Shown here: piece after piece, positions 11,556 to 61,208 of the stretch
Layout: each line of letters starts with the position of its first letter
Numbering within the stretch: the stretch's first letter is position 1
DNA from: Anolis carolinensis
Lineage: Eukaryota
Reading direction: 5' to 3'
Length of the DNA stretch: 64,000 nt
Assembly: GCF_035594765.1 (NCBI RefSeq)
Contig: NW_026943822.1
Coordinates: 17,693,769 to 17,757,768, forward strand
Program-made: the position numbers and the translations under genes
Notes under the pieces: model-generated
Databases searched by the model: none
Told to the model about the DNA's origin: nothing
What the model saw: the letters and a program-made list of their open reading frames with translations, nothing else

Positions 11556-12506
11556 TAGATGCAGTTTCCTATTTCTATGGTACCATCATGGCAAGCGTAG
11601 TATTTCTTCTGGTCTTCCATCTGACTGATTCAATTTAAATGAGTAAATCATTTAAATACAAGTGCACTGTTCAGGCTCCACTATGCCAAAAATGGCAGAT
11701 TCTGGTGGTGATGTTTTCGTGAGGTTTCTCCCTGCTTCTGTATGCGACCTGTCAAGAACACCTGTGTCCCAGATGCTGCCTAAACCAAGAGCGGCTTCCT
11801 CTGTTTAGAGCAGGATTCTGTCTTGAGCATTTGTGGAAGAAGAAGGCATTTAATGCTGTACCTTAGGAAAAGGCATTTGCAATCTGTCTTTCAGAATCTT
11901 TACTGTGCCATAGGATCTCCTATGAAATGCCCTTCATTACATCCTTTTAAAAAAACTACTGAAGAAGACCAAAAAGAGTGAAAATATTCCGAAAAACTCG
12001 ACCAAGAAGCCCCTGAGACGCAAGTTGCAGGTAACTTTGTTTTTGTGTTGTCGAAGTCTTTCAATGGCCGGAATCACTGGTTTGCTGTGAGTTTTCCGGG
12101 CTGTATGGCCATGTTCCAGAAGCATTGTCTTCTGACGTTTCACCCACATCTACGGCAGGCATCCCCAGAGGTTGTGAAGTCTGTTGGAAACTGGGCAAGT
12201 GGGGTTTATATATCTGTGTAATGTTCAGGGTGGGAGAAAGAACTCTTGTCTGTTGGAGGCAGGTGTGAACATTGCCATTGGTCACCTTGATTAGCATTGA
12301 ATAGCCTTGCAGCTTCAAAGCTTGGCTGCTTCCTACCTGGGGGAATCCTTTATTGGGAGGTGTTAGAAGGGGAGCACAGGGGTGAATGTCAATAAAAGAG
12401 GAGGAAATGTATAGAATATGTTTATATAACTTAACTTTTTCTCAAATAATAAAATAAAAAAGTCCAAAACACCTGGAGGACCGAAGTTTACCCAAGCCTG
12501 GTATAT

Positions 12507-12947: not shown

Positions 12948-13342
12948 GTATGCATATAAAAGAGAGTAGCAAAAAATAGATGGAAGTTGTCATCTGTTTC
13001 ATTTGAAGTTTACTATAGCAGATGTCAACAAAGTGAGAACAGTACAGAGGGAAAATAACTACGAGATGAGAAAGTGAAGCCTTAAAAAAAACAAACCAAA
13101 ATATAGATTTCTCCAGGTTTATATGATACAGTTTTTCCTAACAATCATAATGCAAAGCAGAAGAAAGTTACGAAAGAACAAAAAAAGAACCAAACTAGTT
13201 GAGCTCAAATGGTCAACCCTACTGTCCACATCATAATAAGAGAATAAACTCATAATCTGAGCCACAAATGCAGAGTTGGACGGCAAAAGTGCAATTTCTC
13301 CCGACACTAAAAAAAATCACCGGTTTCTGACTTTGTAGCATC

Positions 13343-16300
13343 ATGAATGTAGACGATGATGCAAAATGGCTGGAGTGGGTGGCCCAGCAGTTTGAAAGTA
13401 TCGCCGGCAAGGATAAAGAAATTGATTTGGAAGAGTTCAAAACAGCTCTCAACGTGAAGGAGGTAGGTTTCCGATCACTGCTGTAAGTTGCTCAAGGGCT
13501 TTGGCTCGGAAGGATTTGGATGTTTGGCTTCCCTGGGGGGAATTTAATACACCAAAACTTCTCTCACTAAGACTCTTTCCCCATATAAATTCAATATGCC
13601 ATAGATACTCATGTATATGTCTAGAACAGTGATTCCCAAAGTGGGCGCTACTGCCCCCTGGTGGGCACTGCAGCGATCCAGGGGGGCGGTGATGGCACCT
13701 ATTAGGACACAGGGGCGGGGCCAGGGGAGGGGCGGGGCCTCTTCCCAAGTGCCAGAGACAGGGCTGAGCACCTTAGGTGCCTGTTAGGACACAGGGGGCG
13801 GAGCTAGAGGAGTGGGCGTGGCTTCTTCCCAAGAGCCCAAGACAGGGCTGAGCATCTATACCTCTCCTGAGGTGCTTGTTGGGAGACAGAGGGCGGAGCT
13901 AGGGAAGGGGGCGGGGCCTCCTTCCAAGAGCCTGAGACAGGGCTGAGCCTCTATACCTCTCCTGAGAGGCTTTTTAGGACTAAAGGGCGGGGCTGGGGTG
14001 GGGGCGGGGCCTCTTCCCAAGAGTGTGAGACAGGGCTGAGCCTCTATCTCTCTCCTGAGAGGCTTTTTAGGACTAAAGGGCGGGGCTAGGGGTGGGGGCG
14101 GGGCCTCTTCCGAAGAGCATGAGACAGGGCTGAGCCTCTATCTCTCTCCTGAGAGGCCTTTTAGGACTAAAGGGCGGGGCTAGCTGTGGGGTGGGGCCTC
14201 TTCCCAAGAGCATGAGACAGGGCTGAGCCTCTGTATACCTGTCAGACCCCAGGCAGCAGGGCACCAAGAACCATACACGGAGGCCAATCTCTATCTAATA
14301 TCTTTATTAAAGAAATGTATAAAAGCAATAAAAACAAGTGAAGAATATAGTTCAGAAGCAGACCTTTCAAATGAGGTCAAATATAGTCCAAAAATGTATT
14401 GTCCAATAAATGATATTAGAGTTCAAAGTTTTTATCCAATACCGAAACACACACTATTGCCAAGCAATAGTGTGGGGAAATGTCTGAGTCTTAGGAGTCC
14501 AAGGTAGCTTGACAACAAGGCTGGAAACAAGGCTGGATACAGGGCTGGATACAAGGCTGGATACAAGGCTGGATACAAGGCAAACAGTGATTCTTGGAAC
14601 AAGGTCCGTGGTTAAAAGCAAGGCGAGGCAAGTCTTGAATACTTAATCCGGGAAGCAAGGAACTGGGGTTACGAAGTCCACACACGATCTTACTCCTGAA
14701 GCTGCTCTGTTGACTCCGCAAAGAATCTCCCGCGTCAGGCACCTATATTGGGTCTCGTTTTCCCGCCAACAATCTCTTTCCCTAGAGAACGGGAAGCGAA
14801 ACCCAACTTTGTCCAGATGCAAGACTCCTTAGAATTTCCCAAGGGAAGCAGGTCTAATCAGCCTGTTGTTTGGCAGCAATCCGTAAACTCCTGCGATTCT
14901 GTTCCCTGACTCCTCTGTCAGCACAATAGGATTCTTTTCTAGGGAACGGAGGCGAGGAATGTCCAAGGTCTGTTTTACTGAATTCTTGGGTACAAACATC
15001 AACATCCGGCAGGTGAAAGGACTCCGGCTCTTGTTGAACCGGCGAAAACCCCATGTTTTCATCTTCATCTGCCTCGATGGCACTAGGAACAGGACTACAA
15101 GGCCCATGAGGCATCACAATACCTCCCCTGAAGCACTTGACAGAACATGGGGGGGGGGGGGTAATAGAGGTTCAGCCCCATCAGGCACTTGGGAAGAGGC
15201 CACGCCCCCTCCTCTAGCCCCGCCCCCGTGTCCTGGCAGGTGCTGCAGGACAGGGATAGAAGCTCAGCCCTGCCTCAGAGCTCGTAACTCCGCCCATCCC
15301 AGTCCTGGCCTCCCATTTGTGGCCCCGCCCACCTCCTCTCCCAGCCCTGCATCTTGGACTAGGGGAGAGGCTCAGCCCCGCCTTCTTGAACAGGAGCCAC
15401 ACCCACCCCTCTAAGCCACGCCCCTTTCCAGGGGGCGCTGAGTCATATTTTTTCTGGAAAGGGGGCAGCAGGCCAAATAAGTTTGGGAACCACTGGTCTA
15501 GACATTTTGGTTAAAAAAAATCAACCCCCCAAAAACTGGGTCAAAAGTGAGTCATGAGGGCTGATTTTTCTTTCCCCCCTTCTCTCCCTTAGTCCTTTTT
15601 TGCCGAGCGGTTCTTTGCTTTGTTCGACTCGGACGGAAGCGGCACCATCAGCCTGGATGAGCTGCTCGAGGCCCTGAAGCTGCTGATCCACGGAAGCGAA
15701 GCAGACAAGCTCCGGTTCCTCTTCCATGTTTATGACGTGGATGGTAAAACCCCAACGACCACCTTCCTTCCGCCAGAGCTTCTCAATCTAAGATTTTGCT
15801 TTTCCACAACCCTCTTGCTCTGCCCATTTCAAGACAGTCACTGCTGGTGGTTGCTTGTGTGTGCATGTTTCCATTGGGGCTCCTGGGCTGTATGTGCCGT
15901 AACCCAGAGTCCTCAATATGTATTTATTTATGTACAGTATTTATATTCCGCCCTTCTCACCCCAAAGGAGACTGAGGGCGGATCACAGAACTCACATATA
16001 CGGCAAACATTCAATGCCATTTATACATTGAGAGACAGATAATTATACATAGATAGAGGTATATAGGGGCCTCCAGTGGCGCAGTGAGTTAAAGCGCTGA
16101 GCTGCTGAACTTGCGGACCAAAATATCACAGGTGCGAATGCGGGGAGCGGAATGAGCGCACACTGTTAGCCCCAGCTTCTGCCAACCTAGCAGTTCAAAA
16201 ACATGCAAATGTGAGTAGATCAATAGGTACTGCTCTGGCGGGAAGGTAACGGTGCTCCATGCAGTCATGCCGGCCACATGACCTTGGCGGTGTCTATGGA

Positions 16301-19300
16301 CAACGCCGGCTCTTCGGCTTAGAAATGGAGATGAGCACCAACCCCCAGAGTCAGTCATGACTAGACTTAACGTCAGGGGAAAACCTTTACCTTTATATAT
16401 ATATACTAGCTTGGGGACCCGGCAGTGCCCGGGTTATTAGTAGACGGCATTGAGTTGTTTGAAGATGTTAGGAAATATCACTTAAGTTTGGTCCAGATCC
16501 ATCATCAGCTGGTTTCAATGCTGTCTGTATAAGGGTGAACTACAACTCCCAGAGCAAGAAATGAGTGATGCTACTTGGTCCATCTTCCCCCAATCTGCTC
16601 CAGGGCGAAAAGGGTTTCATGGGGGTTCTATGTGCCAAGTTTGGTCCAGTTCCGTCACTGCTGGGCGTCGCAGTGACCTGTGGGAGTCGTAGCGATTGAA
16701 AGTACTACAAATCCTATCACCCATGGGCCATCGTCCCACAAACGGCACCAGGGCGTAAAGCGCATCATGGGGATTAAGTGTGCTAAGTTTGGTCCAGATC
16801 CGTCATTCCTGGTGGTCTCAGTGGCCTGTGATAGTGGCGGCCAATCAGAAAGCTGGCACATACTCGCATGCATACATACATACATACATACAAACATACA
16901 TACAAACATTCACTATATATATATATCCATATATATATCCATATATGGTGTCCATTGGGAATCCTCCCTCTGTTGTCCTAGGCAGTGGATCTATCGAACG
17001 TGGAGAGCTGCGCACGGTCTTGAAATCATGCCTGAAAGAAAGTTCGATTTCTTTGCCGGAAAAGACGCTGGATGACCTCACGGGAGCCCTCTTTGAGTCG
17101 GCTGACTCTGACTGCAGCGGAGCCATAACCTTTGAGGAGCTCCGAGCGGAGCTGGAACATTTCCCCGAAGTCATGGAGAACTTAACCATCAGGTATAATG
17201 CCCTTTCCATGGTCTCCACTTTTTAAGCCGAGGGCCGGTCCACAATCCTTCAGACTGTTGACGGGCCGGATTATCATTTGAAAAAAAAAATACAAACAAA
17301 TTCCGATGCACACTGTACATGTCTTATTTGTAGTGCAAAAACAAACAAACAACAACATTGAAAGAACAATATAATATTTAAAAATAAAAATAATTTTAAC
17401 CAACATACATTTATCAGGATTTCAATGGGAAGTGTAGTCCTGCTTCTGGCCAATGAGATAATCAAGTTAATTAGGGTTGTTGTTGTTGTTGTTGTTGTTG
17501 TTGTGTGCCTTCAAGTCATTTCAAACTTTGGGCGAGCCTAAGTCTAAAATGTATTTATTTATTATTTATTTATTTACTGCATTTATTTACTACATTTGTA
17601 TCACACCCTTCTCACCCCAAAGGGGACTCAGAGTGGCCTACAAATTATATGTACATACAATATAATATATTATTAGCATAACACAATATTAGCATTATAT
17701 ATTACTTTATTGAACTATACCACTATACTGTAATATAATATAGTAATATTATATGTAATATAGAATTGATATTATTATATGGTATTATTATTAGTGTTAT
17801 ATTGTATTACATTATAATATTATTATCAATATTATATGTATATACAATATATTATATTGTAAAACTGAGGGCGGGGGCCAGGTAAATGACCTCGGAGAGC
17901 CGCATCCGGCCCCCGGGCCTTAGTTTGGGGACCCCTGGTCTCCACACTCTCTAAACACCAATTTATCCCCAAAAGGACTCTTCTTAGTAATGGATAGGTC
18001 TGACAAAAGGGTTATCAATCTGAGGTCTGTTGCTCTGTAGACTATATTGTGAGAACCGACAAAATAACATGAAAATTACATTGTTTTTGCTTATTTGTTC
18101 TAGAGACATAGACGTTCGAGGAGTTTGCAATCTCACTCTCTGCGAATGTGGCATGCTATCAGCACTATTGGGAGATTTGATTTAAGTAACATATCTAATA
18201 TTATGGCCTTACACCAGTAAGGGGGTCTATGGTGACTTACAGTAGTAAAAATAAATGTTTTCCCCTGGCATGTACCTAGCGATCTATTCACATTTGCATG
18301 TTTTCGAACTGCTAAGTTGGCAGAAGCTGGGGCTAACAGCGGGAGCTCACCCCACTTCCCGGATTCAAACTACTGACCTTTTGGTCAACAAGTTCAGCAG
18401 CTTAGCGGTTTAACCTGCTGTGTCACTGGGCACTCCAGTACAGTACAGATATTAAAATGAACCATGCACAGTGCCACTTGGGTTGCATCTACATTGCAGA
18501 ATTACTGCCATGGCTGAATGCTATGGAGTTGTAGTTTTACAAGGTCTTTCACCATCAGACAGTGGGTGCTGATGCTTCACCAAACTACAACTCCCGAAAC
18601 CATTGAGTGGTGCCAAACTGCCTTAATTCGACAGCAAGTGGCTGCTCCGTTGATGCCTTATGCCTCTTTCTTGCAGTGCCGCAAGCTGGTTAAAGCCCCC
18701 CATGACTCCCCCAAAGGACCACCCACCGCGCTACCTGAGTCCGGCCTATTGGCACAACAATGGGAGCAAACTGCTTTTCCTGGGCAGCTACCTGGCAGTG
18801 AACATCCTCCTGTTCACTTTGGCAGCATTGAAGCATCTTGGCTCCGGCGCCTGGATCATGCTGGCGAAAGGCTGTGGGCAGTGCCTGAACCTCAACTGTA
18901 CCTTCCTAGTGGTGAGTAAATTGTGTGTATCCATTGCATAAGGTGCACATATGGCCATGGTGGGCTGGGCTGTGGCGCAGCTGGCTAGTAACCAGCTGCA
19001 ATAAATCACTACTGACCGGGAGGTCATGAGTTCGAAGCCCGGATCGGGTTAAGCCCCCGACCATTAAATAGCCCGGCTTGCTGTTCACCTATGCAGCCCC
19101 GAAAGACAGTTGCATCTGTCAAGTAGGGAAATTTAGGTATGCTTTATGCGGGAGGATAATTTAACTAATTTACAACATCATAAAACTGCCAGCAAAACAC
19201 GAGGAAAGGAATGAGGAAGTACAGCCACTAGTGGACGGTGAAGCAACAGCTCCCCCTGTGGCCAGAATCGTGAAGCTGGAAAAAAATGTTAAATGCCTCT

Positions 19301-22300
19301 GTGTCTGTCTATACTGTATGTTGTTTGTCTGTTGACATTGAATGTTTGCCATATATGTGTTCAGTGTAATCCGCCCTGAGTCCCCTTCGGGGTGAGAAGG
19401 GCGGAATATAAATACTGTAAATAAATAAAATAATAAATCTACACTGAGGCATTAATTTCACAAGGTCTTTCACCCTCTTTGCCAAAGAGTGCTGATGCCT
19501 CCCCAGCTATCATTCCCATGTCACCATAACATTGAGCATGTTACACAATCTTGCTTGGAATATCATTCTTATCTTATTTTCTCCTATGGAAGTGCTTTGG
19601 CATTGTAAAATATAAATCTTGTGCTGGTGTGACAATGGTGTCCCGGTTGGTAAGGATGACAATGTCAAAGAGATATGCAAACACACTGAAGGTTCAAAAC
19701 ATAAAACAACATAAGAGCATCATATACATTTGACATTCACATAAGTGTTCACAACAATAATAAAGTACAGTCAACTGTTGTAATACACAGCAGTATCTTA
19801 CAGAATATAATGTTTAAAGAAACTGCAATCATAGAGACTTAAATGCGGGCTGGAGTCAAACCACATAGAGTAGTCTACGGTATTTGAACAATTTCTCAGG
19901 ACTCCAACTAAATTTTGTAAACAACACAGTACTGTAGAGTCTCACTTATCCAACATAAATGGGCCGGCAGAATGTTGGATAAGCGAATATGTTGGATAAT
20001 AAGGAGGCATTAAGGAAAAGCCCATTAAACATCAAATTAGGTTATGATTTTACAAATTAAGCATCAAAACATCATGTTATACAACAAATTTGACAGAAAA
20101 AGTAGTTCAATAAGCAGTAATGCTATGTGATAATTACTGTATTTACGAATTTCAAAATATGATATATACTACAAAAATGTGTTGGATAATCCAGAACGTT
20201 GGATAAGGGAGTGTTAGATNNNNNNNNNNNNNNNNNNNNNNNNNNNNNNNNNNNNNNNNNNNNNNNNNNNNNNNNNNNNNNNNNNNNNNNNNNNNNNNNN
20301 NNNNNNNNNNNNNNNNNNNNNNNNNNNNNNNNNNNNNNNNNNNNNNNNAATATTAATAATAATATTATGTTGTAATACAATGTAATAATAATTATAATTC
20401 ACTATTATAATTGTATATTTATATTATATGCAATATTACTAATAATATTGCAATATAGTAGTATAATATAATATATTGTATGTATATATACTTGTAAACC
20501 GCCCTGAGTCCCCTTCGGGGTGAGAAGGGCGGTATATAAATGTCGCAAATAAATAAATAAATAAATAAATATGTGTATTAGTCCATCATGCACATTCAAC
20601 CTTTGCAAACTAATATATGATGATACAATGTGAAACTAAAAGAATCAATTATAAAATCAATTGGCTTAAACCTGATGTGGAGTCAAACTGACTCAGAGTC
20701 TCTGTAGTACTGGAGCAATTCTTCAGGACTCCACAGGTCTTGAAACACTTAATCTAGAAGATAAACCTTGAGAAAAAGATCTTATAGCTATTTAAGATCC
20801 TGTGTTGTCGAATGTATATGATGCTCTAATATACATACTGTGTTTTATGTTTTGAACCTTCAGTGTGTTTGCATATCTCTTTGACATTGTTTAGGATAGA
20901 CATCTGTGTTTATTTATTACTATATTCTGCCTGCAATATGGTAAGGATGACAACCTGTCCCCCGTTTTGCCTCCAAGGTGGTGATGTTGCGCCGGTGCCT
21001 GACCTGGTTGCGGGCCACTTGGGCGGCCAAAGTCCTTCCGCTTGACCAGAGCGTCCTTCTCCATCGGCTGATCGGCTGCTCCGTGGCCGCTCTGAGCGTC
21101 CTTCACACAGGGGCTCACGTGGCCAACTTTGGTGAGTGCCTCTTTCCATTGAGGTTGTCTTCTGCTGACTTTCATAGAATCATAGAAGTTCTTCCTAATG
21201 TTTAGGTGGAATCTGTCAGAGCGCGCGGTTTGGATAAACACACATGCAGCGGAAGATCAACGAAGAATCACTGGCACCAATAAATAGGCTGAAGCCTGTT
21301 TGGCTTTCTACAAAAGATTTACTGACAAACGGAAAACTCTCAAGACGACATATACATACAGAGTGCAAATAGGCAGAGAGCAGAGGGCAGAGGTCAGAAC
21401 AGATAACACAGGGAGCTATTTATAACCACCTCTGCTGTCTGATGCAATACACAGTTAACTCTTTACACCAGGGGTCCCCAAACTAAGGCCCGGGGGCCGG
21501 ATGCAGCCCTCCAAGGTCATTTACCTGGCCCCCGCCCTCAGTTTTATAATATATTTTTTATATCAGTTTTAATAATATAATATATTGTATATACATATAA
21601 TATTGATAAAAATATTATAACGTTATACAATATAATACTAATAATAATACCATATAATAATATTAATTATATGTTATATATTACATATAGCATTACAGTA
21701 TAGTGGTATAGTTCAATATAGTAATGTATAATGCTAATATTGTGCTATGCTAATACAGTAATATAATATATTGTATGTACATACAGCTGCTCTGAGTCCC
21801 CTTCGGGGTAAGAAAGGTGGGATATAAATGTAGTAAATAAATGTAGTAAGTAAATAATTAATTAATTTTAGACTTAGGCTCACCCAAATTCTGAAATGAC
21901 TTGAAGGCACACAACAACAACAACAACAACAACCCTAATTAACTTGACTATCTCATTGGCCAGTAGCAGGCCCACACTTTCCATTGAAATCCTGATCGGT
22001 TTATGTTGGTTAAGATTGTTTTCATTTTTAAATATTGTATTGTTCTTTCATTGTTGTTGTTGTTGTTGTTGTTTTGCACTACAAATAAGACATGTGCAGT
22101 GTGCATAGGAATTTGTATTTTTTTTCAAATGATAATTCGGCCCCTCTATAGTCTGAAGGATTGTAGACCGGCCCTTTGCTTTAAAAGTTTGAGAACCCCT
22201 GCTTTACACACTCGCATCGTGGACAGCAGACAGTGCATGATGCAATCTCCAGCTCACATTGCAACACTATAACTCAATTACATTTAAACAACTCTATATA

Positions 22301-25149: not shown

Positions 25150-28100
25150 CAGTATTTATATTCCGCCCTTCTCACCCCATTGTACACATATAAGGCAAAC
25201 ATTCAATGCCATATAACATAGAATAGAGACAGAGACAGACGCAGAGGCAATTTAAACCTTCTCCAGCTTCCAGCTTCCTGAGGGTATGCTTGATTCCGGC
25301 CACAGGGGGAGCAGCTGCTTCATCATCCACTGCGACTGCAACTTCCTCATTCCAACGACAGCTGGGTGATTTTTATGGTGTCGTAAATTAGCCTCCCCAT
25401 GTATAAGTGGTATCTAAATTTCCTACTTGATAGATGCAACTATCTTTAGGGTTGCTTAGGTCAACAACGAGCAAGAGCTATATTTTTATTTTTATTGGCG
25501 GGTGCTCACCCCGACACTGGCCTCGAACTCATGACCTCTTGGTCAGAGTGATTTATTGCAGCTGGCTGCTAACCAGCCTGCGCCACAGCCCGGCCCCGGG
25601 TTGCAGAACTTGATGTCTCACCAGTTTGTTGGAGGACATCATCCATAGCTTGATTCCATCGTCCTTCTTCCAAAGTTGGCTGCCTTTCTTTCCTCTGTCT
25701 TTAAGTGCAGGTGACCCACTTGGTGATCCAGAGACCCCCGTTTTTCCACTACAAGCCCGGAGACTATGTGTACCTAAATATCCCAGCTATAGCCAAGTAC
25801 GAATGGCACCCATTCACCATCAGCAGTGCCCCGGAGCAACCAGGTGGGTGGCCGCCAGAAAGGCTTTCGAAATTTAGTAAAGGGAAGGGAGATGGAAAAT
25901 GCTGGAAGTGCGGAAAACACAATGGAGATTTTATACATATGTGGTGGAGGTGTAAGAGAATAAAAAAGTTCTGGCAGGAAATTCACAAAGAAATGGAGAA
26001 AATACTCCGAAATAAATTTGCTTTACAACCAGAGTACTTCCTTTTAGGTAATACAGATTTTCAGATGGACCTCAATACAGAAAAGCTTTTCACATACAGT
26101 AGAGTCTCACTTATCCAACATAAACGGGCCGGCAGAATGTTGGATAAGCGAATATGTTGGATAATGAGGGATTAAGGAAAAGCCTATTAAACATCAAATT
26201 AGGTTATTTTACAAATTAAGCATCAAAACATCATGTTATATAACAAACTAGCTGTGCCTGGCCACGCGTTGCTGTGACGTTGTCTGGTGGTGTTGGTGAG
26301 AAATTGTTGAGGTAGTGGTGGTATTGAATGTGTGTTGTATGGTTGTCTTTATGTTTAGTATGCACACTGAAGTGGATTATATGGCAGTGTGGAGTCAAGA
26401 TAATCCAGTTCAAAGCAGATAATATAAGATTCTAAATGAGTTATATAGCTGTGTGGAAGGGCTTTGAGTCTACACTACCATATAATCCAGTTAAAATCTG
26501 ATAATCTGTGGAAGAGGCCTAAGTGAGGCCTAACTGTGCCTGTCCCCTGGGCTGAGTAGATTGCTAGGAGACCAAGTGGGCGGAGCTTAGCCACCTAACT
26601 GGCAGCAATTGGATAAAAACTATTATTCCTCTCCCTGTAATTAGGACTTTATTTTTCTTTTCTTTTTGTTGTATCAACCTAGAGCCGTGAATGATGGGTT
26701 GTGTTGTCAAATTTCAAGGTTGGGGGTCCTGTAGTTTTGTTGTTTTGTCCGCTGCCCTGATGCCATCACTCTTTTATATATATAGATTTGACAGAAAAAG
26801 TAGTTCAGTACACAGTAATGCTATGTGATAATTACTGTATTTATGAATTTAGCACCAAAATATCACGATGTATTGAAAACATTGACTACAAGAATGCGTT
26901 GGATAATCCAGAACGTTGGATAAGTGAGACTCTACTGTATATGGATGTTTAGCCGGCTACAATTATTTGGAAGAAGATGTGTTTCGCGATGCAGAGANNN
27001 NNNNNNNNNNNNNNNNNNNNNNNNNNNNNNNNNNNNNNNNNNNNNNNNNNNNNNNNNNNNNNNNNNNNNNNNNNNNNNNNNNNNNNNNNNNNNNNNNNNN
27101 NNNNNNNNNNNNNNNNNNNNNNNNNNNNNNNNNNNNNNNNNNNNNNNNNNNNNNNNNNNNNNNNNNNNNNNNNNNNNNNNNNNNNNNNNNNNNNNNNNNN
27201 NNNNNNNNNNNNNNNNNNNNNNNNNNNNNNNNNNNNNNNNNNNNNNNNNNNNNNNNNNNNNNNNNNNNNNNNNNNNNNNNNNNNNNNNNNNNNNNNNNNN
27301 NNNNNNNNNNNNNNNNNNNNNNNNNNNNNNNNNNNNNNNNNNNNNNNNNNNNNNNNNNNNNTTCCACAACTTTTTATGTATATGTTTAAAATCATAAATA
27401 AAATATGGAGGGGAAATAAACATGGGTGGCCGCCCAGAAACCAACCTGAATTGGGAATTAATGTGGAAAAGTTGCATATGGCTTATTTTCCCATTCAAAT
27501 TTGGCACAATTTTGGGGTGAAACCGGCTCCAAATAGTACTTTGGGTTCTCCCAAAGTGTGCCAAAACTCCCTGCTCAACTCTCCGTTGCACAAGAAACCA
27601 TCACAAATACCTTCTGCTCCTTCCATTTCCCCTTCGTAATAGCAGGAAAAAGGTGATGAAATGTCTTTTCATGGCAACATTTTGGAAACAGAGAGAAAAC
27701 AAATGTGACACTAGAATAATTATGTCATGGTAAGGGATGCCAGCAAGAGGAGAATGGTTCAAAGCACCAGAAACCCCTCAACTGGAGGATCCAGAAAAGT
27801 GTCCCTCTTCTCGAGCCCTCTCTTCTTTCTTCTTTCTCCCCAAAGGGACTATTTGGCTCCATATTCGGTCTCTGGGACAATGGACCAACCAATTGTATGA
27901 ATACTTCTGGCACCAAGGTGACCTTCGTGACTGTGAACCCGACACAAAGCAACAGAAGAAAACCAGCTCCGAGAAATGGGTAGATTTGCAGTTTAAAATT
28001 GGAATTATCATTAATGTAGACTCCTCTCTGGCCTTTGTTGTTGCTGTTTAAATAGCACCAGGCGTATTAAATGTGAATATGTACAATATTTTTGGCAGAC

Positions 28101-35448: not shown

Positions 35449-37583
35449 CACAGCAAACAAGATAGATATGCTGGATCTCGTTTCACAAAATCACAAGTTG
35501 AACACTTCCCAAGTGTCTAGGACTGTGTGATGTATTTTCGGATGATGCGTGCAGATCCCAGTAGGGTGGCCTTTTGCAGTTGACAGATCGTAATTTTGTC
35601 AATGTCTATTGTTTCCAAATGCCGGCTGAGATCTTTTGGCACGGCACCCAGTGTGCCCATCACCACCGGAACTACCTGTACTGGTTTCTGCCAGAGTCTT
35701 TGAAGTTCAATCTTGAGGTCCTGATAGCGGCTGAGTTTTTCCTGTTGTTTTTCGTCAATGCGACTGTCACCTGGGATGGCAACATCAATGATCCAACCCT
35801 TTTTCTTTTCCACAACTATGATGTCTGGTGTGTTGTGTTCCAGAACTTTGTCAGTCTGAATTTGGAAGTCCCACAGTATCTTTGCGTGTTCATTTTCCAA
35901 TACTTTTGCAGGTTTGGGCCACATGGTTGTGCCTCTGTTTGTAGTCTGTCTGTGCAATTTTCTTACAGCAGCTGAGGATATGATCAATGGTTTTGTCGGT
36001 TTCCTTGCACAGTGAGAGCACCTTGAAGTGGGGCTGAACCCAGTGGCTTTATCAGCAAGATATATAAATAAAAATTAATAATAATAATAATAATCTGCAC
36101 GCATCATCCGAAAATACATCACACAGTCCTAGACACTTGGGAAGTCTTCGACTTGTGATTTTGTGATACGAAATCCAGCATATCTATCTTGTTTGCTGTG
36201 TCATAATAAAATAATACAGTAGAGTCTCACTTATCCAACATAAACGGGCCGGCAGAATGTTGGATAAGCGAATATCTTGGATAATAAGGAGGGATTAAGG
36301 AAAAGCCTATTAAACATCAAATTAGGTTATGATTTTACAAATTAAGCACCAAAATATCATGTTAGACAACAAATTTGGCAGAAAAAGTAGTTCAATATGC
36401 AGTAATGCTATTTAGTAATTACTGTATTTATGAATTTAGCACAAAAATATCACGATATATTGAAAACATTGACTCCAAAAATGCGTAGGATAATCCAGAA
36501 CGTTGGATAAGCGAGTATTGGATAAGTGAGACTCTACTGTAATTACTGTATTTACGAATTTAGCACCAGAATATTATGATGTATTGAAAACATTGACTAC
36601 AAAAATGCGTTGGATAATCCAGAATGTTGGATAAGTGAGACTCTACTGTAATAATAATTCTGACCTTGCTAAAGTATCTATATGTGACCGTGTCCATTTT
36701 CCTCTTAATTGTAACCTCTCGTTGCACTGATTTGCTGTACTCCACTCGCAAAAATACAAAAAAGTCCTGCAAGTTGTTATTTAATGTATTTTCGAAGACT
36801 TTCTTGGCCAGAATCACTGGTGTGTTGTGTGGTTTCCGGACTGTATGGCTATGTTCTAGCTGCATTTTCTCCTGATGTTTCACCTACATCTCTGGTTGGC
36901 ATCTTCAGAGGATCCTCTGAAGATGCCAATCATAGATGTATGCGAAACATCAGGAGATGATGCCGCTAGAACATTGTCATACAGTCTGGAAACCACACAA
37001 CACTCCATTCCTGCACGAATTCTGACATGTCCTTCTGACACCCAGACCGCTTCCTGGAGATGCACCTCTACATGACCTCGGCCCTCAACAGGAATGACAT
37101 GAAGGCCATTGGCTTGCAGGTGGCCTTAGACCTGCTTGCTGAAAAGGAGAAGAAGGACTCCATCACAGGCCTCAAGACAAGGACCCAGCCTGGACGCCCA
37201 AACTGGAACAAGGTGGGCTCCCAAAAGGTTGTCTACTAGCATTTCCAATGCATAGTTTGTTCCCCAGACTTGGGATCTTACTCTTGAGAAACGGAACTTA
37301 CTTCCAAAGTTTACTATTTTCTGGCTTATGGTCCCTTCAATTCCTCTTTCTACGCTGAACTAAATCATGAGAAGAGCAGGATCTAAATTCCGTATGTTAT
37401 TGTTGACAAGTTTAGGGAGAGATGTTACACCTGACTTGTTTTGCTCCCCAGCTTTTCCAGAAACTGGCCAAAGACAACAAAGGGAAGGTCCATGTCTTCT
37501 TCTGCGGCTCTCCGGCTCTGGCCAAAGTCATCAAAGGCCACTGTGAGCAGTTCGGCTTCAGGTTCTTCAAAGAGAACTTCTGA
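13343..37583 (+). CDS. NOX5: NADPH oxidase 5 (EF-hand Ca2+-activated), 16 coding exons, about 756 aa
   Basis: Exons 13343-13462, 15593-15743, 16982-17192, 18677-18911, 20978-21131, 22338-22513, 24027-24209, 25711-25843, 27846-27979, 28997-29116, 30600-30644, 31456-31580, 33042-33126, 34629-34728, 37046-37212, 37452-37583. All are GT-AG with consistent phases (2271 nt). Motifs: EF hands (DSDGSGTISLDE, DVDGSGSIERGE, DSDCSGAITFEE), heme histidines, HPFTISSAP, GIGITPF, VFFCG, terminal KENF*. Confidence 0.96.
13627..15495. mobile_element. hAT-type non-autonomous transposon with internal GC-box tandem repeats
   Basis: TIRs cagtgattcccaaa / tttgggaaccactg; 8-bp TSD gtctagaa / gtctagac. Confidence 0.8.
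14240..15118. mobile_element. Solo LTR nested in the hAT element
   Basis: TG...CA ends; 5-bp TSD ATACC. Confidence 0.8.
16066..16394 (+). mobile_element. Sauria-type SINE (other copies about 18266-18435 minus, 32357-32543, 34787-35067)
   Basis: tRNA-like head ggtggcgcagtg, conserved body, (accttt)n tail. Confidence 0.8.
18963..19437 (+). mobile_element. tRNA-derived SINE with L2-like tail (other copies about 25115-25597 minus, 31755-32222, 39586-39800, 45953-46180 minus)
   Basis: A/B boxes (tggcgcagctgg, gagttcgaagc); tail gccctgagtccccttcggggtgagaagggcgg followed by (taaa)n. Confidence 0.78.
20220..20348. other. Assembly gap
   Basis: Run of N. Confidence 1.
21214..22320. mobile_element. 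Solo LTR containing a nested hAT MITE (21469-22201)
   Basis: TG...CA ends with TSD GAATC. The MITE has caggggt TIRs and an 8-bp TSD ctttacac; a related MITE lies at 17220-17937 (TSD gtctccac). Confidence 0.8.
25862..27422 (+). mobile_element. L1/Tx1-type LINE 3' fragment with nested MITE and Helitron; spans an N gap
   Basis: CWKCGKHNGDFIHMWWRC (L1 ORF2 zinc knuckle); TSD-like tgggtggccgcc(c)agaaa on both sides. A second L1-like insert at about 28064-28632 has TSD aaatagcaccaggc. Confidence 0.72.
26998..27361. other. Assembly gap
   Basis: Run of N. Confidence 1.
30671..31032. mobile_element. Solo LTR
   Basis: TG...CA ends; 5-bp TSD ACTAC. Confidence 0.75.
35447..36012 (-). mobile_element. 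R4/Dong-type LINE 3' fragment
   Basis: ILWDFQIQTD...HNTPDII...IIDVAIPGD (PD..D endonuclease) next to an (AAT)n tract. Other fragments at 28721-28898, 36095-36213 and 40820-40940. Confidence 0.82.
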
Positions 37584-38327: not shown

Positions 38328-40203
38328 TTACAAAACCCTGGCTTCCCTCTTGGCTTGTTTTAGAAGCTGCATCTCTTTATCTATCAGATCCTTCAGCACC
38401 TGTTGGGTCTGACGGTTTGGATTTTCACAGAACACAGCCTTGATGGTCTTCAGGATGGCTATCGCTTTGTCCACAATCTCTTTGGATGCTTTTCTATTTG
38501 GAGAATTTCGCACAAAGGAACTTAGTCGGGCAGTGAAATGATCCAGCACTCTCAAAAATGATTTGAGCTTCGCCAATTCCATTTGCAGTTGGGCCAACTT
38601 GAGGTCTGTCGAGTCAGGGGTGGTGGGTGTCTCCACGTGGATCGTCAACGACACCGTGGTGGCCGGGGGCGAAGGCACGATGGTGTCATTGGCCACCTCC
38701 TCCTGCTTCTGTTTGAAACCCTTGACCAGCTTATTCTCCGCATTTTTCACCAGCGCCAGCATCTCTCTCAGGTAATCTTTGACATTCTCGAGCTTTGTGT
38801 TGAAGTCTGGGTCAATTTTAACAACCACCGGAGTATTCCTTAACATTTTGGTCAAGACATCAATCAAGCCCATGATGTCTCCTCTGGAAGATTTATGATT
38901 CCAGGTGAAATGATTGGTTTTCACTATGGCTATGTTGTTATTTTTCGGTGGCTTTTCTGAATGGGAAGAATAGATGGCAACCGATGCGCTCATTACGTGA
39001 TGGGTGACTTTTGGAGAGACGACCTCGGCCACAGCAGGCGTGTCCGGACGCAGAATGATGGTGCCATGTATATCACTCTGAGGCCTCGAGGGTGATGTCT
39101 CAAAGCTGACCTCCACCTTCTGTGGCAGAATGCTGATCACGGGTTCTTCTGTGACAGAAAGAGTTATCCCATTCTGGGGAACCTCTTGAGTGGTGGTCTC
39201 TTGGGTGGTGGTTGTGTCCTTGTGCAGCACGATGGTGGCAATTTTGTCATTCCGCAGTCTCCAAAAAGCTGTTGTCGTTGGGGTGTGATGTACTTCGGTT
39301 CCGGTCGTCTCCAATCTCTGTGATCCTGATCCCTCTGGTCGTTCTGATCTCTCTGAAAAGCAGAAAGTCAGGCCGTGTAAGTGACAGCTGGATGCCTCTA
39401 GTTCAGGGGTCCCTAAAATTTTTAAACACGAGGCCAATTCACTGTCCCTCAGACTGCTGGAGTGCAAGACTATAGTTTTTTGTAAAAAACTATGAACAAA
39501 TTCCTATGCACACTACACATATCTTATTTTGAAGTAAAAACAAAACAAAATGGGAACAAATACAACCTCAATGTTGTATTTGTGGTGGGCTGTGGCGCAG
39601 GCTGATAAGCAGTCAGCTGCAGCCAGCTGCAACAAATCACTCTGACCAAGAGGTCATGAGTTCGAGGCCAGCTCGGAGCTGCGTTTGTCTCTGTCTTTGT
39701 TCTATGTTAAGGCACTGAATGTTTGCCTTATATGTGTAATGTGATCCGCCCTGGGTCCCCTTCGGAGTGAGAAGGGCGCAATATAAATACTGTAAATGAT
39801 AAATTGTGGATAATAAAACCAAAAGGAAGAAGAACGGAAGCTGAATTTTTTTTATTCCATTTTTTACATTTTTATCTTTTTTCTACTATATTACTAAATA
39901 TATTTCTTCTCTCTTTTCTTCTCTCTCTTTTTCTTTTTTCTTCCCTCTCTCCCCTTTTTTTCTTTACCACCTCCCCCTCCCTTTTCACTTTCTTTTCTAG
40001 ATCCATGATTGTTCTCACTCTTTCAATGTTTAAAACTTCCTAATAAAAACTATTTTAAAAAAATAACAAAAAGGGTTGGAAGAGACCCCTTGGTCCATCT
40101 AGTCCAACTCCTTTCTGCTTTTGTGCACCAAAACAGAATCAAAGCACCCCTGACAGATGGCCACCCAGCCTCAATGTGAAGAAGAAGAAGAAGAAGAAGA
40201 AGG

Positions 40204-40257
<54 letters not shown>

Positions 40258-40941
40258 GTTGGAAGAGACCCCTTGGGACATTTAGTCCAACCCCCGTCTG
40301 CCTTTGATAGAATTGTGCTTTTCCGGAATGGCACGGGGATGGACTTGATGACCCCCGTGGTGTCTTCCAGCTCTATGATTCTATGATTTTCCAAAATTTC
40401 ATTGAAAAGGAACTTACTCTGGCCGCCTTGTTGCCCTGCCGAAATATGTACCGTCGCCATTGGTTCGATGGAAATCTGCACAAGGAAAAAGAAAGGCAAC
40501 ACTAGCCATTTCCATTGGATTGTTATGGTATTTTCTTTTCATCCTTTGCCACAAGCCTGAATTTCAAAATGCAGGAGGGTTCGGAGTCGTGTGCCTTCAA
40601 GTCATTCCTGGCTTGTAAGGCAGTCTTTCTCACGGGGTTTCTTAATGAAATTCGTTCAGAAGGGGTTTTTTTTTCCTTCCCATAAAATGTCTTGACTTGA
40701 GAACATCCAAAATACAACCCTCTTGAACTAAGATTACCTGTAAATGTTGAACATTTTGAAAATCCCGGTGCAGATCTGAAGAAAGAAATGGTTGTTGTTA
40801 TTATTATTATTATTTTATTATGACACAGCAAACAAGATAGATATGCTGGATTTCGTATCACAAAATCACAAGTCGAACACTTCCCAAGTGTCTAGGACTG
40901 TGTGATGTATTTTCAGATGATGCGTACAGATCCCAGTAGGG

Positions 40942-40991
<50 letters not shown>

Positions 40992-54082: not shown

Positions 54083-54976
54083 ACAGTGAGGCTGGGTGGC
54101 CATCTGTCAGGGATGCTTTGCTTGTGCTTTTGGTGCACAAAGGTAGAAAGAGTTGGATTAAATGGCCCAAGGGGTCTCTTCCAACCCTCTTTATTATTAC
54201 AGTAGAGTCTCACTTATCCAAGCCTCGCTTATCCAAGCTTCTGGATAATCCAAGCCATTTTTGTAGTCAATGTTTTCAATATATCGTGATATTTTGGTGC
54301 TAAATTCGTAAATACAGTAATTACTATGTAGCATTACTGCCTATTGAACTACTTTTTCTGCCAAATTTGTGGTATAAAATGATGTTTTGGTGCTTAATTT
54401 GTAAAATCATAACCTAATTTGGTGTTTAATAGGCTTTTCCTTAATCTCTCCTTATTATCCAACATATTCACTTATCCAATGTTCTGCTGGCCCGTTTATG
54501 TCGGATAAGTGAGACTCTACTGTACTTGAGTATAAGCTGACCTGAATATAAGCCCACCAGGACCCTCACCCAAGTATAAGCCGAGGAGGGTTTTTTTCAG
54601 TTCTAACAAGGGCTGAAAAACTAGGCTTATACTCGAGTATATACAGTACCTTTGGCTTATCTAAAATTGACCAATGGCAGAGGGTCTTCCTCACCTTCCA
54701 CACCCACCTGGCATAAGTGATACCTGTGACCTCATTTGTTGATTTCAAGCTAACTGTTGGTCTTGGAACTTTCTGGAGAAAGGCACCAGCTCACAGGAAG
54801 GGAGGGGCACATGCAGAGGCAAAGCCACATAGGCAAAAGTTTACTATTTTCCGGCTTATGGTCCCTTCAATTCCTCTTTCTGAACTAAATCATGAGAAGA
54901 GCAGGATCTAAATTCAGTATATTATTGTTGACAAGTTTAGGGAGAGATGTTACACCTGACTTGTTTTGCTCCCCAG

Positions 54977-55108
54977 CTTTTCCAGAAACTGGCCAAAGAG
55001 AACAAAGGGAAGGTCCATGTCTTCTTCTGTGGCTCTCCGGCTCTGGCCAAAGTCATCAAAGGCCACTATGAGCAGTTCGGCTTCAGGTTCTTCAAAGAGA
55101 ACTTCTGA
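54977..55108 (+). pseudogene. NOX5: Duplicated NOX5 terminal exon (intact; possible alternative last exon)
   Basis: Encodes LFQKLAKENKGKVHVFFCGSPALAKVIKGHYEQFGFRFFKENF*. Acceptor ttgttttgctccccag is intact; 3 nt differ from 37452-37583. Confidence 0.88.
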
Positions 55109-56209
55109 AGTTTGGATTCTCCACGTCTCCATCCCTGCTGGGTTGGGAAGCCCCGTCTTCTCCGTTCGGACTCCTTCCTTGGAGAGCTTTCACTATGAGA
55201 GGCATCCAGAAACACCTTTCGTTTCGTCTTCTCTAGTTTGTGGGAGCTCCTCAGAGGCATCATCGCAGATGAAATGGTGTCAAACCGCATTCATTCTACA
55301 GTGTAGATGCACCCAAAAAGGCAGCACCTAGAGAAAAGCTAACAGAGTAAAGCATGCAGGCCTCCCAGTGTCCAAATATATTAATCTGTTTGCAGCAGAC
55401 GTACAGTTGATGTATAGTATAGAATAGTACAGCCTCAGAGGCGTGAGGTCGGAAACTGGACCTCACAACCTCTGAGGATGCCTGCCATAGATGTGGGTGA
55501 AACATCAGAAGAGAATGCTTCTTGAACATGGCCATACAGCCCAGAAAACTCAGAGCAACCCAGTTATTCTGGCCATGAAAGCCTTCAATGTTACCTCTTC
55601 ATCTAATTCTTTTTTAAAAAATTGTTGTGTGTGTGTGTATGTGTGTGTGCATTTTCTTCTTTTGCTTTCATTCCTACTGTCGGAAACTGGACCTCACAAC
55701 CTCTGAGGATGCCTGCCATAGATGTGGGTGAAACGTCAGAAGAGAATGCTTCTTGAACATGGCCATACAGCCCAGAAAACTCAGAGCAACCCAGTTATTC
55801 TGGCCATGAAAGCCTTCAATGTTACATCTTCATCTAATTCTTTTTAAAAAAATTGTTGTGTGTGTGTATGTGTGTGTGCATTTTCTTCTTTTGCTTTCAT
55901 TCCTACTATCCTATAAATGAACTGTTCCACCACTTTCGTTGTAAAAAGAAAAGACAGCATTAATTACTTTTTTCACTTTTTATTTATCTTTATCACATCC
56001 TATCTATATATAACAATCTATATATATATCTACCTATATCTATATCAATCTATATCTATCTATATCAATCTATATCTATATCTATATCAATCTATATCTA
56101 TAGGGGGAGAGGGTGTCAGCCCGAGAGCCAGGGAAAGAATACTAAAAAATGAAAGAAAGGGAGGGGTGGGGATTTTTGACTTTTGTACATGTCTGTTGAT
56201 GGGAAATGC

Positions 56210-59073
56210 TTACAAAACCCCTCTTTCCCTCTTGGCTTGTTTGAGAAGCTGCATCTCTTTATCTATCAGATCTTTCAGCATCTGTTGGTTCCGACCGTTT
56301 GGATTCTCACAGAACACACTCTTGATGGTCCTCTGGATGGCTATCGCTTTGTCCACAATCTCTTTGGATGCTTTTCTATTTGGAGAATTTCGCACAAAGG
56401 AACTTAGTCGGGCAGTGAAACGATCCAGCACTTTCACAAACGATTTGAACTTCGCCACTTCCTTTTGCAGTTCTGCCAACTTGAGGTCTGTCGAATCAGG
56501 GGTGGTGGGTGTCTCCACGTGGATGGTCAACAACACCGTGGTGGCCGGGGGCGAAGGCACGATGGTGTCTTTGGCCACCTCCTCCTGCTTCTGTTTGAGA
56601 CCCTTGACCAGCTTATTCTCCACTTTTCTCGCCAGCTCCAGGATCTCTCTCAGGTAATCTTTGACTTTCTTGAACCTTGAGTTGAAGTCTGTGTCCTCTC
56701 TAACAGCCACCGGACTATGCCTTAACATTTTGGTCAAGACATCAATCAAGCCCATGATGTCTCCTCCGGAAGATTTATGATTCCAGGTGAAATGATTAGT
56801 TTTCACTATGGCTATGTTGTTACTTTTCAGTGGCTTTTCTGAATGGGAAGAATAGATGGCAAACAATGCGCTCATCACGTGAAGGTTGACTTTTGGAGAG
56901 ATGATCTTGGCCACAGCAGGCGTGTCCGGACGCAGAATGATGGTGCCATGTATATCACTCTGAGGCCTCGAAGGTGATGTCTCAATGCTGACCTCCACCT
57001 TCTGTGGCAGAATGCTGATCACGGGTTCTTCTGGAAGAGAAAGAGATATCACTTTCTGGGGAACCTCTGGAGTGGTGCTCTCTTGGGTGGTGGTGGTGTC
57101 CTTATGCAGCATGATGGTGGCAATTTTGTCATTCCGCAGCCTCCAAAAAGCTGTTGTCGTTGGGGTGTGATGTACTTCCGTTCCGGTCGTCTCCAATCGC
57201 TGTGATCCTGATCCCTCTGGTCGTTCTGATCTCTCTGAAAAGCAGAAAGTCAGGCCGTGTAAGTGACAGCTGGATGCCTCTAGTTCAGGGGTCCCCAAAC
57301 TTTTTAAACAAGGGGCCAAGTCACTGTCCCTCAGACTGCTGGAGGGCAAGACTATAGTTTATAAAAAAAAACTGTGAACGAATTCCTATGCACACTACAC
57401 ATATCTTATTTTGAAGTAAAAACAAAACAAAATGGGAACAAATACAACCTCAATGTTAATACTCATTATCATAATAAAAATAATAAAAAGGGTTGGAAGA
57501 GACCCCTTGAGCCATCCAGTCCAACCCCCACCTGCTTTTGTGCACCAAAACATAATCAAAGCACCCCTGACAGATGGGCACCCAGCCTCAATATTATTAT
57601 TATTATTAATAATAATAATAATAATAATGACCATTCCTTTCTTCAGGTCTGCGCCAGGATTTTCAAAATGTTTGGCATCTACAGGTAATTTTAGTTGTAT
57701 TTTGGATGTTTTCAAGCCATAACATTTTCTGGGAAGGAAAATAAATAAAAAACAAACCCTTCTGAACAATCTCACTAAGAAACCCCGTGAGAAAGGCTGC
57801 TTTATAAGCCAGGAATGATTTGAAGGCACACGGCATCGAACCCCTCTGCCGCTTGAAATTCAGGCTTGTGGCAAATGATGAAAAGCCTGCCTCAATAATA
57901 TAACAATCCAATGTAAATGGCTAGTGTTGCCTTTCTTTTTCCTTCTGCAGATATCTATCGAACCAACAGCGAATGTACATATTTTGGCAGAGGAACACAA
58001 CACCAAGAGTAAGTTCCTTTTCAATGACATTTCGGAAAAATCATCGAGTTATAGAGCTGGAAGACACCGCGGGGGTCATCAAGCCCATCCACGTGCCATG
58101 CAGGAAAAGCACAATTCGATCAATCCTAGAGAAAAAGCATTTCTGTTTGTTGTTTATGTTTTGTGCCTTTTTGGTTGCACTGAGAACGGCAATACCATAG
58201 TATGGATACATGAATGTGCCTATTATCCAGCAGAGTTTGCTATTTCTTCCAGTACTGAAAAATAAAAGAATTTTAGGCAGAACTGTGTGCTATGGTCCTG
58301 TTTAATTGTGTGGTCCTTACATTGAAAGTAGTTGTTATTCTCCAGAAACTTTGTTTCTGTGGCTGCCACAAACTATGTTGAATAGGGTTGTTTTTAATTG
58401 TGTCAAAAGCGACTTGAGAACATACTGCAAGTCGCTTTTGGTGTGAGAGAATTGGCCGTCTACAGAGACATTGCCCAGGGAACGCTCGGATGTGTTAGCT
58501 GGGAGGCTTCTCCCATGTCCCCGCAAGCTAGAGCTGACAGACGGGAGCTCACCCCATCTCGCAGATTCGAACCGGCAACCTTCAGGTCAGCTGTTTAGCC
58601 AGCACAAGGGTTTAACCCGTTACGCCAGGTTGAGACTCTATGAGATATTTGTTGAAAAACTAGAGCAAAAAGCGCTGCAGGATGTCCTACAAAAACAAAG
58701 TTTTTGCAGTTTAATAAACCTTTTCCATGTTTTTATGATAGAACCAATTAGGAAATGGCCCAGGAACAAAAATCGTATTACTGTACATAGTGTTAATAGG
58801 AGTCTACAATGCCATATAATCCAGTTCAAAGCAAAACATCTGGATTCTGTGGCAGTGTAGATGAGGCCTGAAAGGTTCCTACTTGTCTCCGTAAGGAATA
58901 GAAGACCCTTCCTAACTATTCCTCCCATGAAGCAAAGTCTTATAAAAGGGAACCCAGCCTCCTCCTCCTCCTCCTCCTCCTCGAAGCCACTTACTGGGAA
59001 TCGGGGCCCCGTCCAGTCCTGGCACGAGACATAGCAAGGCTATCAAGAGCAGCATTGGTAGCAAGATCTCCAT
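56210..59073 (-). CDS. SPESP1: SPESP1-like secreted protein, copy B; exon 1 (59073-58995) plus last exon (57234-56210), predicted 367 aa; exons 2-3 inverted
   Basis: Signal-peptide exon has the same translation as copy A. The 1025-nt last exon is intact (about 55 aa differences from A). Homologues of exons 2-3 lie on the + strand at 57647-57684 and 57951-58008. A phase-1 donor joins a phase-1 acceptor in frame. Confidence 0.65.
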
Positions 59074-59925: not shown

Positions 59926-61208
59926 CTATATAATAAAAGTCAGTGTTTGTATGTGGGTATGTATGTATGTGGGTATGCAGAATGACGGACCTGGCCCAAA
60001 CTTGACACACTTAACCCCCATGACGCACTTTATGGCCTGGTCTGTTTGGGGGAGGATGGACCACGGATGATGGGATTTGCAGTACTTTGTAACGCTTTGA
60101 CTCCCACAGACTACTGCAATGCCCACCAATGATGGAACTGGACCAAACTTGGCACACAGAACCCCCATGACCCCCTTTATGTCCTGGTGTAGATTGGGGG
60201 GAAATGAACTGTGGATAATGGGATTTGCAGTACCTTCACTCACTTCCTGAGACTATTGCGACTACCAGGAATGACAGAATTGGACCAAACTTGGCATACA
60301 TATACCAAATAACACACTTTGCATGCTGCACCACTTTGGGGGAGAATGGACCAAGGAGTATGGGATTTGCAGTACTTTCAAACACTGTGTCTCTGACAGA
60401 CCACTGTTACTCTAACTCATGACGGATCAGGACCAAAACTGGCACACATACCCCCCATGACCCAATTTATGTCCTGGTTCAATTTGAGGGAGGATTTACC
60501 AAGGATAATGGGACTTGCAGTACCTTCACTCACGTCCTGAGACCACTGCAACTGCCACAAATGACTGATCCAGACCAAACTTGGTACACAGAGCACCCAT
60601 GACCCACTCTATACCCTGGTGTGGTTTGGAGGATGATGGACTATGGATGATGGAAATTGCAATACCTTCACTCACTTCCAGAGACCACTGCGACCCCCAG
60701 CAATGACTGATCAAGTCCAAACTTCACACACAGAGCCCCAATGACCCACTCTACACCCTGGTGAAGTTTGGAGTACAATGGACCATGGACGATGGGAATT
60801 GCAATACCTTCACTCACTTCCTGAGAACATTGCAACCCCAACCAATGCCTGAACAAGACCAAACTTGCCACATAGAGCCCCCATGTCCTACTCTACACCT
60901 GGGTGCTGTTTGCAGGGGGATGGACCGTGGATGATGGGATTTGCAGTATCTTCACTCACTTCCTGAGACCACTGCGACCCACACTAATGACTGAACAAAA
61001 TCAAACTTGCCACACAGAGCACTCATGATTCACTCTACGTCCTGATACTGTTTGGAGGGGGATGGACCATTTATGATGGGACTTGCATATGGGAGTTGTA
61101 GTTCAGCCCCACCCAATGAACCCTGCTGACTCTGGACCTAGACTAAATCTGGAACACAGGCAAACAATGCCTTTCTCAAATGACCCGGGCACCGCCGGGT
61201 CCCCAAGT
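59926..61208 (+). mobile_element. Helitron-like element with internal tandem repeats of about 120 bp
   Basis: 5' tctatataataaaag; repeated gaccaaacttggcacacag...gggatttgcagtaccttcactcac units; 3' hairpin gacccgggcaccgccgggtc. Confidence 0.6.

Follow-up and report, generated by a model that had tools for sequence, protein, structure and literature searches.

What are the two anonymous, related genes that lie beside NOX5 in the green anole, and are they ordinary members of their family? The DNA analysed here (the window) is 64,000 nucleotides (nt) of Anolis carolinensis, from assembly GCF_035594765.1, contig NW_026943822.1, positions 17,693,769 to 17,757,768. A first-pass annotation of its sequence had taken the two genes for the squamate orthologue, locally expanded, of SPESP1, a gene studied in mammals only, whose protein there stabilises the equatorial segment, the site of sperm–egg fusion. 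We find that these genes (copy A, LOC100566389, whose last exon is identical, and copy B, LOC134293936), together with a third copy on another contig (LOC103282145), almost certainly descend from a single amniote SPESP1 gene. All three are "uncharacterised" in RefSeq. Descent is well supported by profile bridging via turtles and crocodilians, by the gene tree and by synteny in other lizards. Thus, descent and expansion stand, but the anole copies are not typical SPESP1 members or typical squamate orthologues; they are a relocated, internally deleted and fast-evolving variant.

Two open reading frames of 379 amino acids on the minus strand (38328-39467 and 56210-57349) had been read as the last exons of spliced genes. 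The frames are real, but both begin at an intronic TTG, and they were rejected as whole proteins; the true last exons (38328-39352 in copy A, 56210-57234 in copy B) are 1025 nt each and follow an AG acceptor. Copy A has four coding exons (79+38+58+1025 nt) with canonical GT-AG sites and compatible phases, encoding 399 amino acids and including a signal-peptide-like first exon, as had been predicted. RefSeq isoform X1 (record P0006, the full-length copy A protein in our analyses, exons otherwise being used individually) has the identical layout plus 21 extra upstream residues, and X2, another of the three RefSeq isoforms, omits the 96-nt exon 2-3 cassette. The features of the two genes are as follows.

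44348-44426, minus strand: coding part of copy A exon 1; resembles a signal peptide and comprises 26 codons plus 1 nt; the RefSeq start is an upstream in-frame ATG at 44489.
40738-40775, minus strand: copy A exon 2, of 38 nt; opens a frame-neutral cassette of 96 nt that other reptiles share, present in X1 and absent from X2.
40418-40475, minus strand: copy A exon 3, of 58 nt; completes the 96-nt cassette.
38328-39352, minus strand: copy A exon 4; encodes the TAFW block, a linker rich in Ser and Thr, the helical hairpin and the C-terminal helices, without an EEKTL helix.
58995-59073, minus strand: copy B exon 1; signal-peptide-like.
57608-58123, plus strand: inverted cassette of copy B, with exon 2 at 57647-57684 and exon 3 at 57951-58008; not spliceable into the gene.
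56210-57234, minus strand: copy B exon 4; with exon 1 it encodes the 367 amino acids of LOC134293936.

Copy B had been expected to be spliced like copy A. Because its exon 2-3 cassette is inverted, exon 1 instead joins exon 4, in phase, and the four-exon model was rejected. The cassette of the third copy is inverted in the same way, and its exon 3 donor has since decayed. Frames are open in all three copies, and their predicted splicing is backed by splice signals, cross-species conservation and RefSeq isoforms. Two haplotypes placed one after the other by the assembly do not explain the pair: the difference is 7.4% in exon 4 and about 12% in the cassette, whose orientation differs as well.

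Membership of the family was assessed with the Pfam SPESP1 profile (PF15754), and remembered segments of human SPESP1 were judged via this profile only. The best match of copy A is to SPESP1 (E=5.9e-5, 22.8-23.1 bits, profile positions 92-265), as is that of the third copy (21.1 bits); both scores are below the 27-bit cut-off. Relatives in other reptiles exceed it: Elgaria scores 28.5, Podarcis 31.9, a turtle 45.1 and a crocodile 48.5, with the turtle match spanning profile positions 9-321 of 322 and the crocodile match likewise extending to 321. The turtle and crocodile relatives are themselves found from the anole exon (E 4e-10 and 8e-8), and that exon gave 14 proteins in an exhaustive search; those that were identified belong to lizards, a snake, a turtle or a crocodile. 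In an alignment of 38 members, no Pfam family other than SPESP1 reaches E<=0.001, and 22 of the members match it (best E 1.6e-15). Copy A shares its four-exon layout and its last-exon acceptor with other reptiles.

Gene order gives further evidence. In leopard gecko and skink, the order is an ANP32-like leucine-rich repeat gene (-), SPESP1 (+) and NOX5 (+), and we take ANP32A to be the upstream neighbour of human SPESP1. SPESP1 (+) lies directly 5' of NOX5 (+) in Phrynosoma and Elgaria, and an older gene model from the alligator joins them into one. Human SPESP1 and NOX5 have a common strand and start site (PMC2568002). The anole differs. Its copies do adjoin NOX5, as had been noted, but on the 3' side and the opposite strand, whereas the ancestral position is 5' on the same strand; the flanking order seen in the other lizards is therefore not found here. 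Within the window, NOX5 (+) runs from about 13.3 kb to 37583 (5' exons at 13337-17193), followed by copies A and B (-) and by the first exon of a gene resembling LEO1 (about 61988). Further features of the locus are as follows.

37452-37583, plus strand: last coding exon of NOX5; copy A converges on NOX5 tail to tail.
54977-55108, plus strand: orphan duplicate of the NOX5 last exon, with a counterpart beside the third copy.
51783-51852, minus strand: orphan third exon 1, with a 3-codon deletion and an intact donor, inside a duplicated block (51408-51860).
11644-12044, plus strand: conserved block 5' of NOX5, which in Phrynosoma and Elgaria lies 0.75-0.9 kb after the SPESP1 stop.

No SPESP1 precedes the conserved block in the anole, where the ancestral site is present, gap-free and empty. 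Thus, anole SPESP1 left its ancestral site 5' of NOX5 and now lies 3' and antisense. The orphan NOX5 last exon means that the duplicated unit included the NOX5 tail, and SPESP1 was copied together with that tail into at least three anole genes. For the orphan exon 1, no downstream exons of its own were found. Relocation has also occurred in another iguanian, Phrynocephalus forsythii, independently of the anole: it has two SPESP1 copies at a distance from NOX5, one next to an alpha-mannosidase gene, the other between proprotein convertase and IQGAP genes (L006 10001-16940; L009 10001-14204).

The gene tree follows the species tree, recovering snakes, geckos, lacertids, agamids, turtles and crocodilians, and makes Phrynosoma the sister group of the anole copies, with support of 89/97 when all sites are used (the full tree) and of 76 for the core tree. 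The anole lineage differs in rate. Over 157 core columns that align well, identity to Elgaria is 43-44% for the anole copies and 78% for Phrynosoma. A relative-rate count in the core gives 61 changes in the anole and 7 in Phrynosoma (p 6e-11, about 8 times faster), and the core branch lengths are about 0.9 and 0.11, respectively.

Part of the protein has also gone. In complete non-anole proteins, the last exon starts with an EEKTL-type helix, which corresponds to the start of the SPESP1 profile (the exceptions are models that start downstream). The anole copies keep the same splice acceptor but have about 66 fewer residues before the TAFW block, with the alignment gap at the EEKTL helix. A profile of the EEKTL motif picks out the Phrynosoma locus at 52.6 bits and finds no match in the window or in the third-copy locus. 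The FDQLTNG motif is replaced in the anole copies, and the QHLQISIE stretch is a separate cassette common to reptiles. Before the copies split, about 66 codons including the conserved N-terminal helix were lost and the core diverged very fast. The deletion also corrects an earlier alignment. Four blocks had been matched in order with human SPESP1, and the quoted anole motifs are all present; the first block was rejected, however, because the anole proteins are without the helix to which the profile start aligns in other reptiles, and the mammalian motif had been paired with the wrong segment.

What remains is a secreted-type architecture. The anole genes have a signal-peptide-like first exon and a large last exon without a transmembrane anchor; read from the sequence, the proteins carry a hydrophobic leader resembling a signal peptide and no second hydrophobic segment. 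Their linkers are 25-31% Ser/Thr, and a single C-terminal Cys is conserved. AlphaFold tentatively predicts a helical hairpin (195-256) and three C-terminal helices (284-376) in a low-confidence model (pTM 0.27). The models are poor overall (pTM 0.20 and 0.27), and pLDDT reaches about 70-75 in the C-terminal helices only. Foldseek and PDB sequence searches gave no structural match, and the ESM Atlas no usable match. In other reptiles, the region between hairpin and C-terminal helices varies: skink SPESP1 (L004 19458-21662) reaches 837 amino acids because of a long Ser/Thr/Pro/Glu repeat there, and the linker is also expanded in geckos and lacertids. Short snake isoforms (P0010, P0037 and P0050) are without the FDQLTNG motif, and P0010, the one aligned, is also without the helical hairpin, which suggests that they arise by an internal splice within the large last exon.

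The copies have also diverged from each other, their last exon 3-4 times more than the DNA around it. Exon 4 differs by 7.4% between copies A and B compared with 2.5% in the non-coding flanks (p 3e-9), and by 7.8% between copy B and the third copy compared with 1.8% (p 4e-16); synonymous sites between copies are likewise raised over the flanks. Diversifying selection combined with patchy conversion would account for this, and so would conversion among older, weakly constrained copies. In the A–B comparison, the helical hairpin shows a 20:0 excess (p=0.008), in one of 15 windows, which is lost after correction for 15. With this as one of 15 tests and synonymous sites also raised, we rejected a firm claim of positive selection. 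A possible but less likely reading is that the ancestral SPESP1 was replaced by a relocated, N-terminally deleted family diversifying under positive selection on the sperm head, with the last exon resisting homogenisation of the flanks and the hairpin as the main target. If true, the copies would be candidate gamete-compatibility or sperm-competition genes in a gene-editable lizard group.

The best explanation overall, to which we give a probability of roughly 0.7, combines descent from SPESP1, the move, multiplication, deletion and fast change with a SPESP1-type mechanism in the acrosome. Acrosomal and equatorial-segment localisation and the need for normal sperm–egg fusion are known for mouse and human only, and in mammals without SPESP1 the equatorial segment is disrupted, fusion-related proteins are mislocalised and fusion is reduced (PMC5320423, PMC11673484). 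Among normal human tissues, SPESP1 is expressed in testis and placenta (PMC8253266). By analogy with mammals, the anole proteins would be made in spermatids and routed through the secretory path into the acrosome, their linkers being presumably glycosylated. The helical part may scaffold membrane proteins, so that the whole might act as a peripheral scaffold keeping the acrosomal membrane and fusion-related proteins in place, as opposed to a fusogen. Without the N-terminal helix, one contact with a partner may be missing. A sperm-acrosome role is, on the mammalian model, probably retained in the anole copies, and on the same analogy we infer the fertilisation role that the first-pass annotation gave them.

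Several observations weigh against this explanation. The anole proteins all score under the Pfam cut-off, and copy B gave no SPESP1 match in the profile search. No mammalian or bird protein was returned by the exon search, the exhaustive search or the searches with two reptile profiles; the link to mammals therefore rests on the Pfam profile and synteny, and the absence of birds from the reptile-profile searches means nothing. Two otherwise conserved motifs, the EEKTL helix and FDQLTNG, are gone. The ratio of non-synonymous to synonymous change (dN/dS) between copies is 0.68-1.09, in no case different from 1, which fits weak constraint too. Of the sampled locus words, several presumed RNA runs contain a share of 0.28-0.55 and others from the same species 0-0.04, all without tissue labels. 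Finally, a mammalian-type equatorial segment is not known from squamate or other reptile sperm, and this suggests an older acrosome role.

Some of these observations are shared by the most serious alternative, that the copies are SPESP1 descendants decaying or under relaxed constraint after relocation, young near-neutral duplicates with little or no fertilisation role. The dN/dS values and the two lost motifs would follow, as would a transposon-rich block holding an orphan exon 1 and an orphan NOX5 tail, and SPESP1 is reported as a pseudogene in horse (PMC3434135). Decay is nevertheless unlikely: the three frames are intact over 323-340 codons with all indels in-frame, the long stem (0.82 changes per site in the core) kept frame, signal exon, splice sites, TAFW block and single C-terminal Cys, and RNA-like runs contain the locus.

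A second alternative, which we judge quite improbable, makes the copies fast-evolving extra paralogues, while an ordinary full-length SPESP1, missed by annotation or assembly, fills the ancestral role at another place in the anole genome. The anole DNA read comprised this window and one other locus, the word-based searches of proteins were limited to 8000 scored candidates and passed over some species, and Phrynocephalus shows that two relocated copies can occur. The empty, gap-free ancestral site argues against it, as does the failure of two reptile profiles and the exhaustive search to return a canonical Anolis protein. There is slighter probability still that these are neofunctionalised, secreted mucin-like proteins acting outside the germ line (for example in skin, gland or reproductive tract) from a new promoter region beside the LEO1-like gene. 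The new genomic position, the Ser/Thr content of the linkers, weak Pfam Mucin matches and reported SPESP1 activity in mammalian dermal fibroblasts (PMC11103130) favour it; exon 1, however, moved along with the gene, and the split among the unlabelled RNA-like runs fits restricted expression. That the reptile family is unrelated to mammalian SPESP1, its Pfam match reflecting composition and generic helices, would agree with the weak anole scores and the lack of direct mammalian or structural matches but is largely refuted by relatives that exceed the curated cut-off over almost the whole profile and by the gene's shared position and strand next to NOX5 in four lizards.

The surroundings of the copies hold further elements. 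A BEL/Pao-type retroelement remnant (48149-51394, plus strand; Pfam Peptidase_A17) includes, at 49912-50817, a processed fragment of a 2-oxoacid dehydrogenase E2/PDHX-like gene (Pfam Biotin_lipoyl and 2-oxoacid_dh). A retroviral-type pol fragment (52540-53700, minus strand) with RNase H and partial integrase is interrupted by stops; a part also occurs next to the third copy (L002 32410-34826). The first coding exon from 61988 (plus strand), which presumably belongs to a LEO1-like gene, is head to head with copy B about 2.9 kb away, and a diverged tandem repeat of about 145 bp lies between them (59980-61108). A 78-bp tandem repeat array (9965-11550) just upstream of the conserved block may mark a rearrangement breakpoint. 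Two runs of N fall within NOX5 introns (20220-20348 and 26998-27361).

The inference that SPESP1 predates mammals is correct, following from descent, but it is already present in automated annotation, as the first-pass annotation had allowed. RefSeq names SPESP1 in Tiliqua (skink), Eretmochelys and Carettochelys (turtles) and Vipera (viper), and has an SPESP1-like entry for Emydura; in UniProt the name is given to proteins of Crocodylus, Phrynosoma and other species. An orthologue in lizards, snakes, turtles and crocodilians dates the gene to the amniote ancestor, which the databases imply and no paper that we found says. We found no paper on reptile SPESP1 or mentioning the anole locus identifiers; of 164 papers that name SPESP1, two refer to reptiles as well, and these, by their titles and abstracts, deal with mammalian fertilisation. 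A survey of gamete-interaction genes included no lizard (PMC3434135). What is new here is that the anole copies moved, multiplied, were internally deleted and evolve fast. They provide a natural deletion of the most conserved N-terminal helix together with a burst of change, and could reveal which parts of the protein matter and whether sexual selection acts on lizard sperm-head genes.

Compared with mammalian SPESP1, a gene of two exons, the anole genes likewise have a signal-peptide first exon, one large last exon, in copy A a match to profile positions 92-265, and a link to NOX5, and encode secreted-type proteins with Ser/Thr-rich linkers and a helical C-terminal half. Unlike it, they are multi-copy, lie 3' of NOX5 and antisense, are without the profile-start helix and score below the cut-off, and copy A carries a two-exon cassette. 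With annotated reptile SPESP1 (Tiliqua XP_066491484.1, Emydura XP_067412186.1, Crocodylus A0A7M4DXF3 and Phrynosoma KAH0620118.1), they have in common the four-exon layout, the same cassette and last-exon acceptor, a TAFW/TPFW-LH block, the helical hairpin and C-terminal helices with one Cys. They differ from these proteins in the deleted EEKTL helix, the replaced FDQLTNG motif, the relocation, the presence of at least three copies and the inversion of the cassette in two of them.

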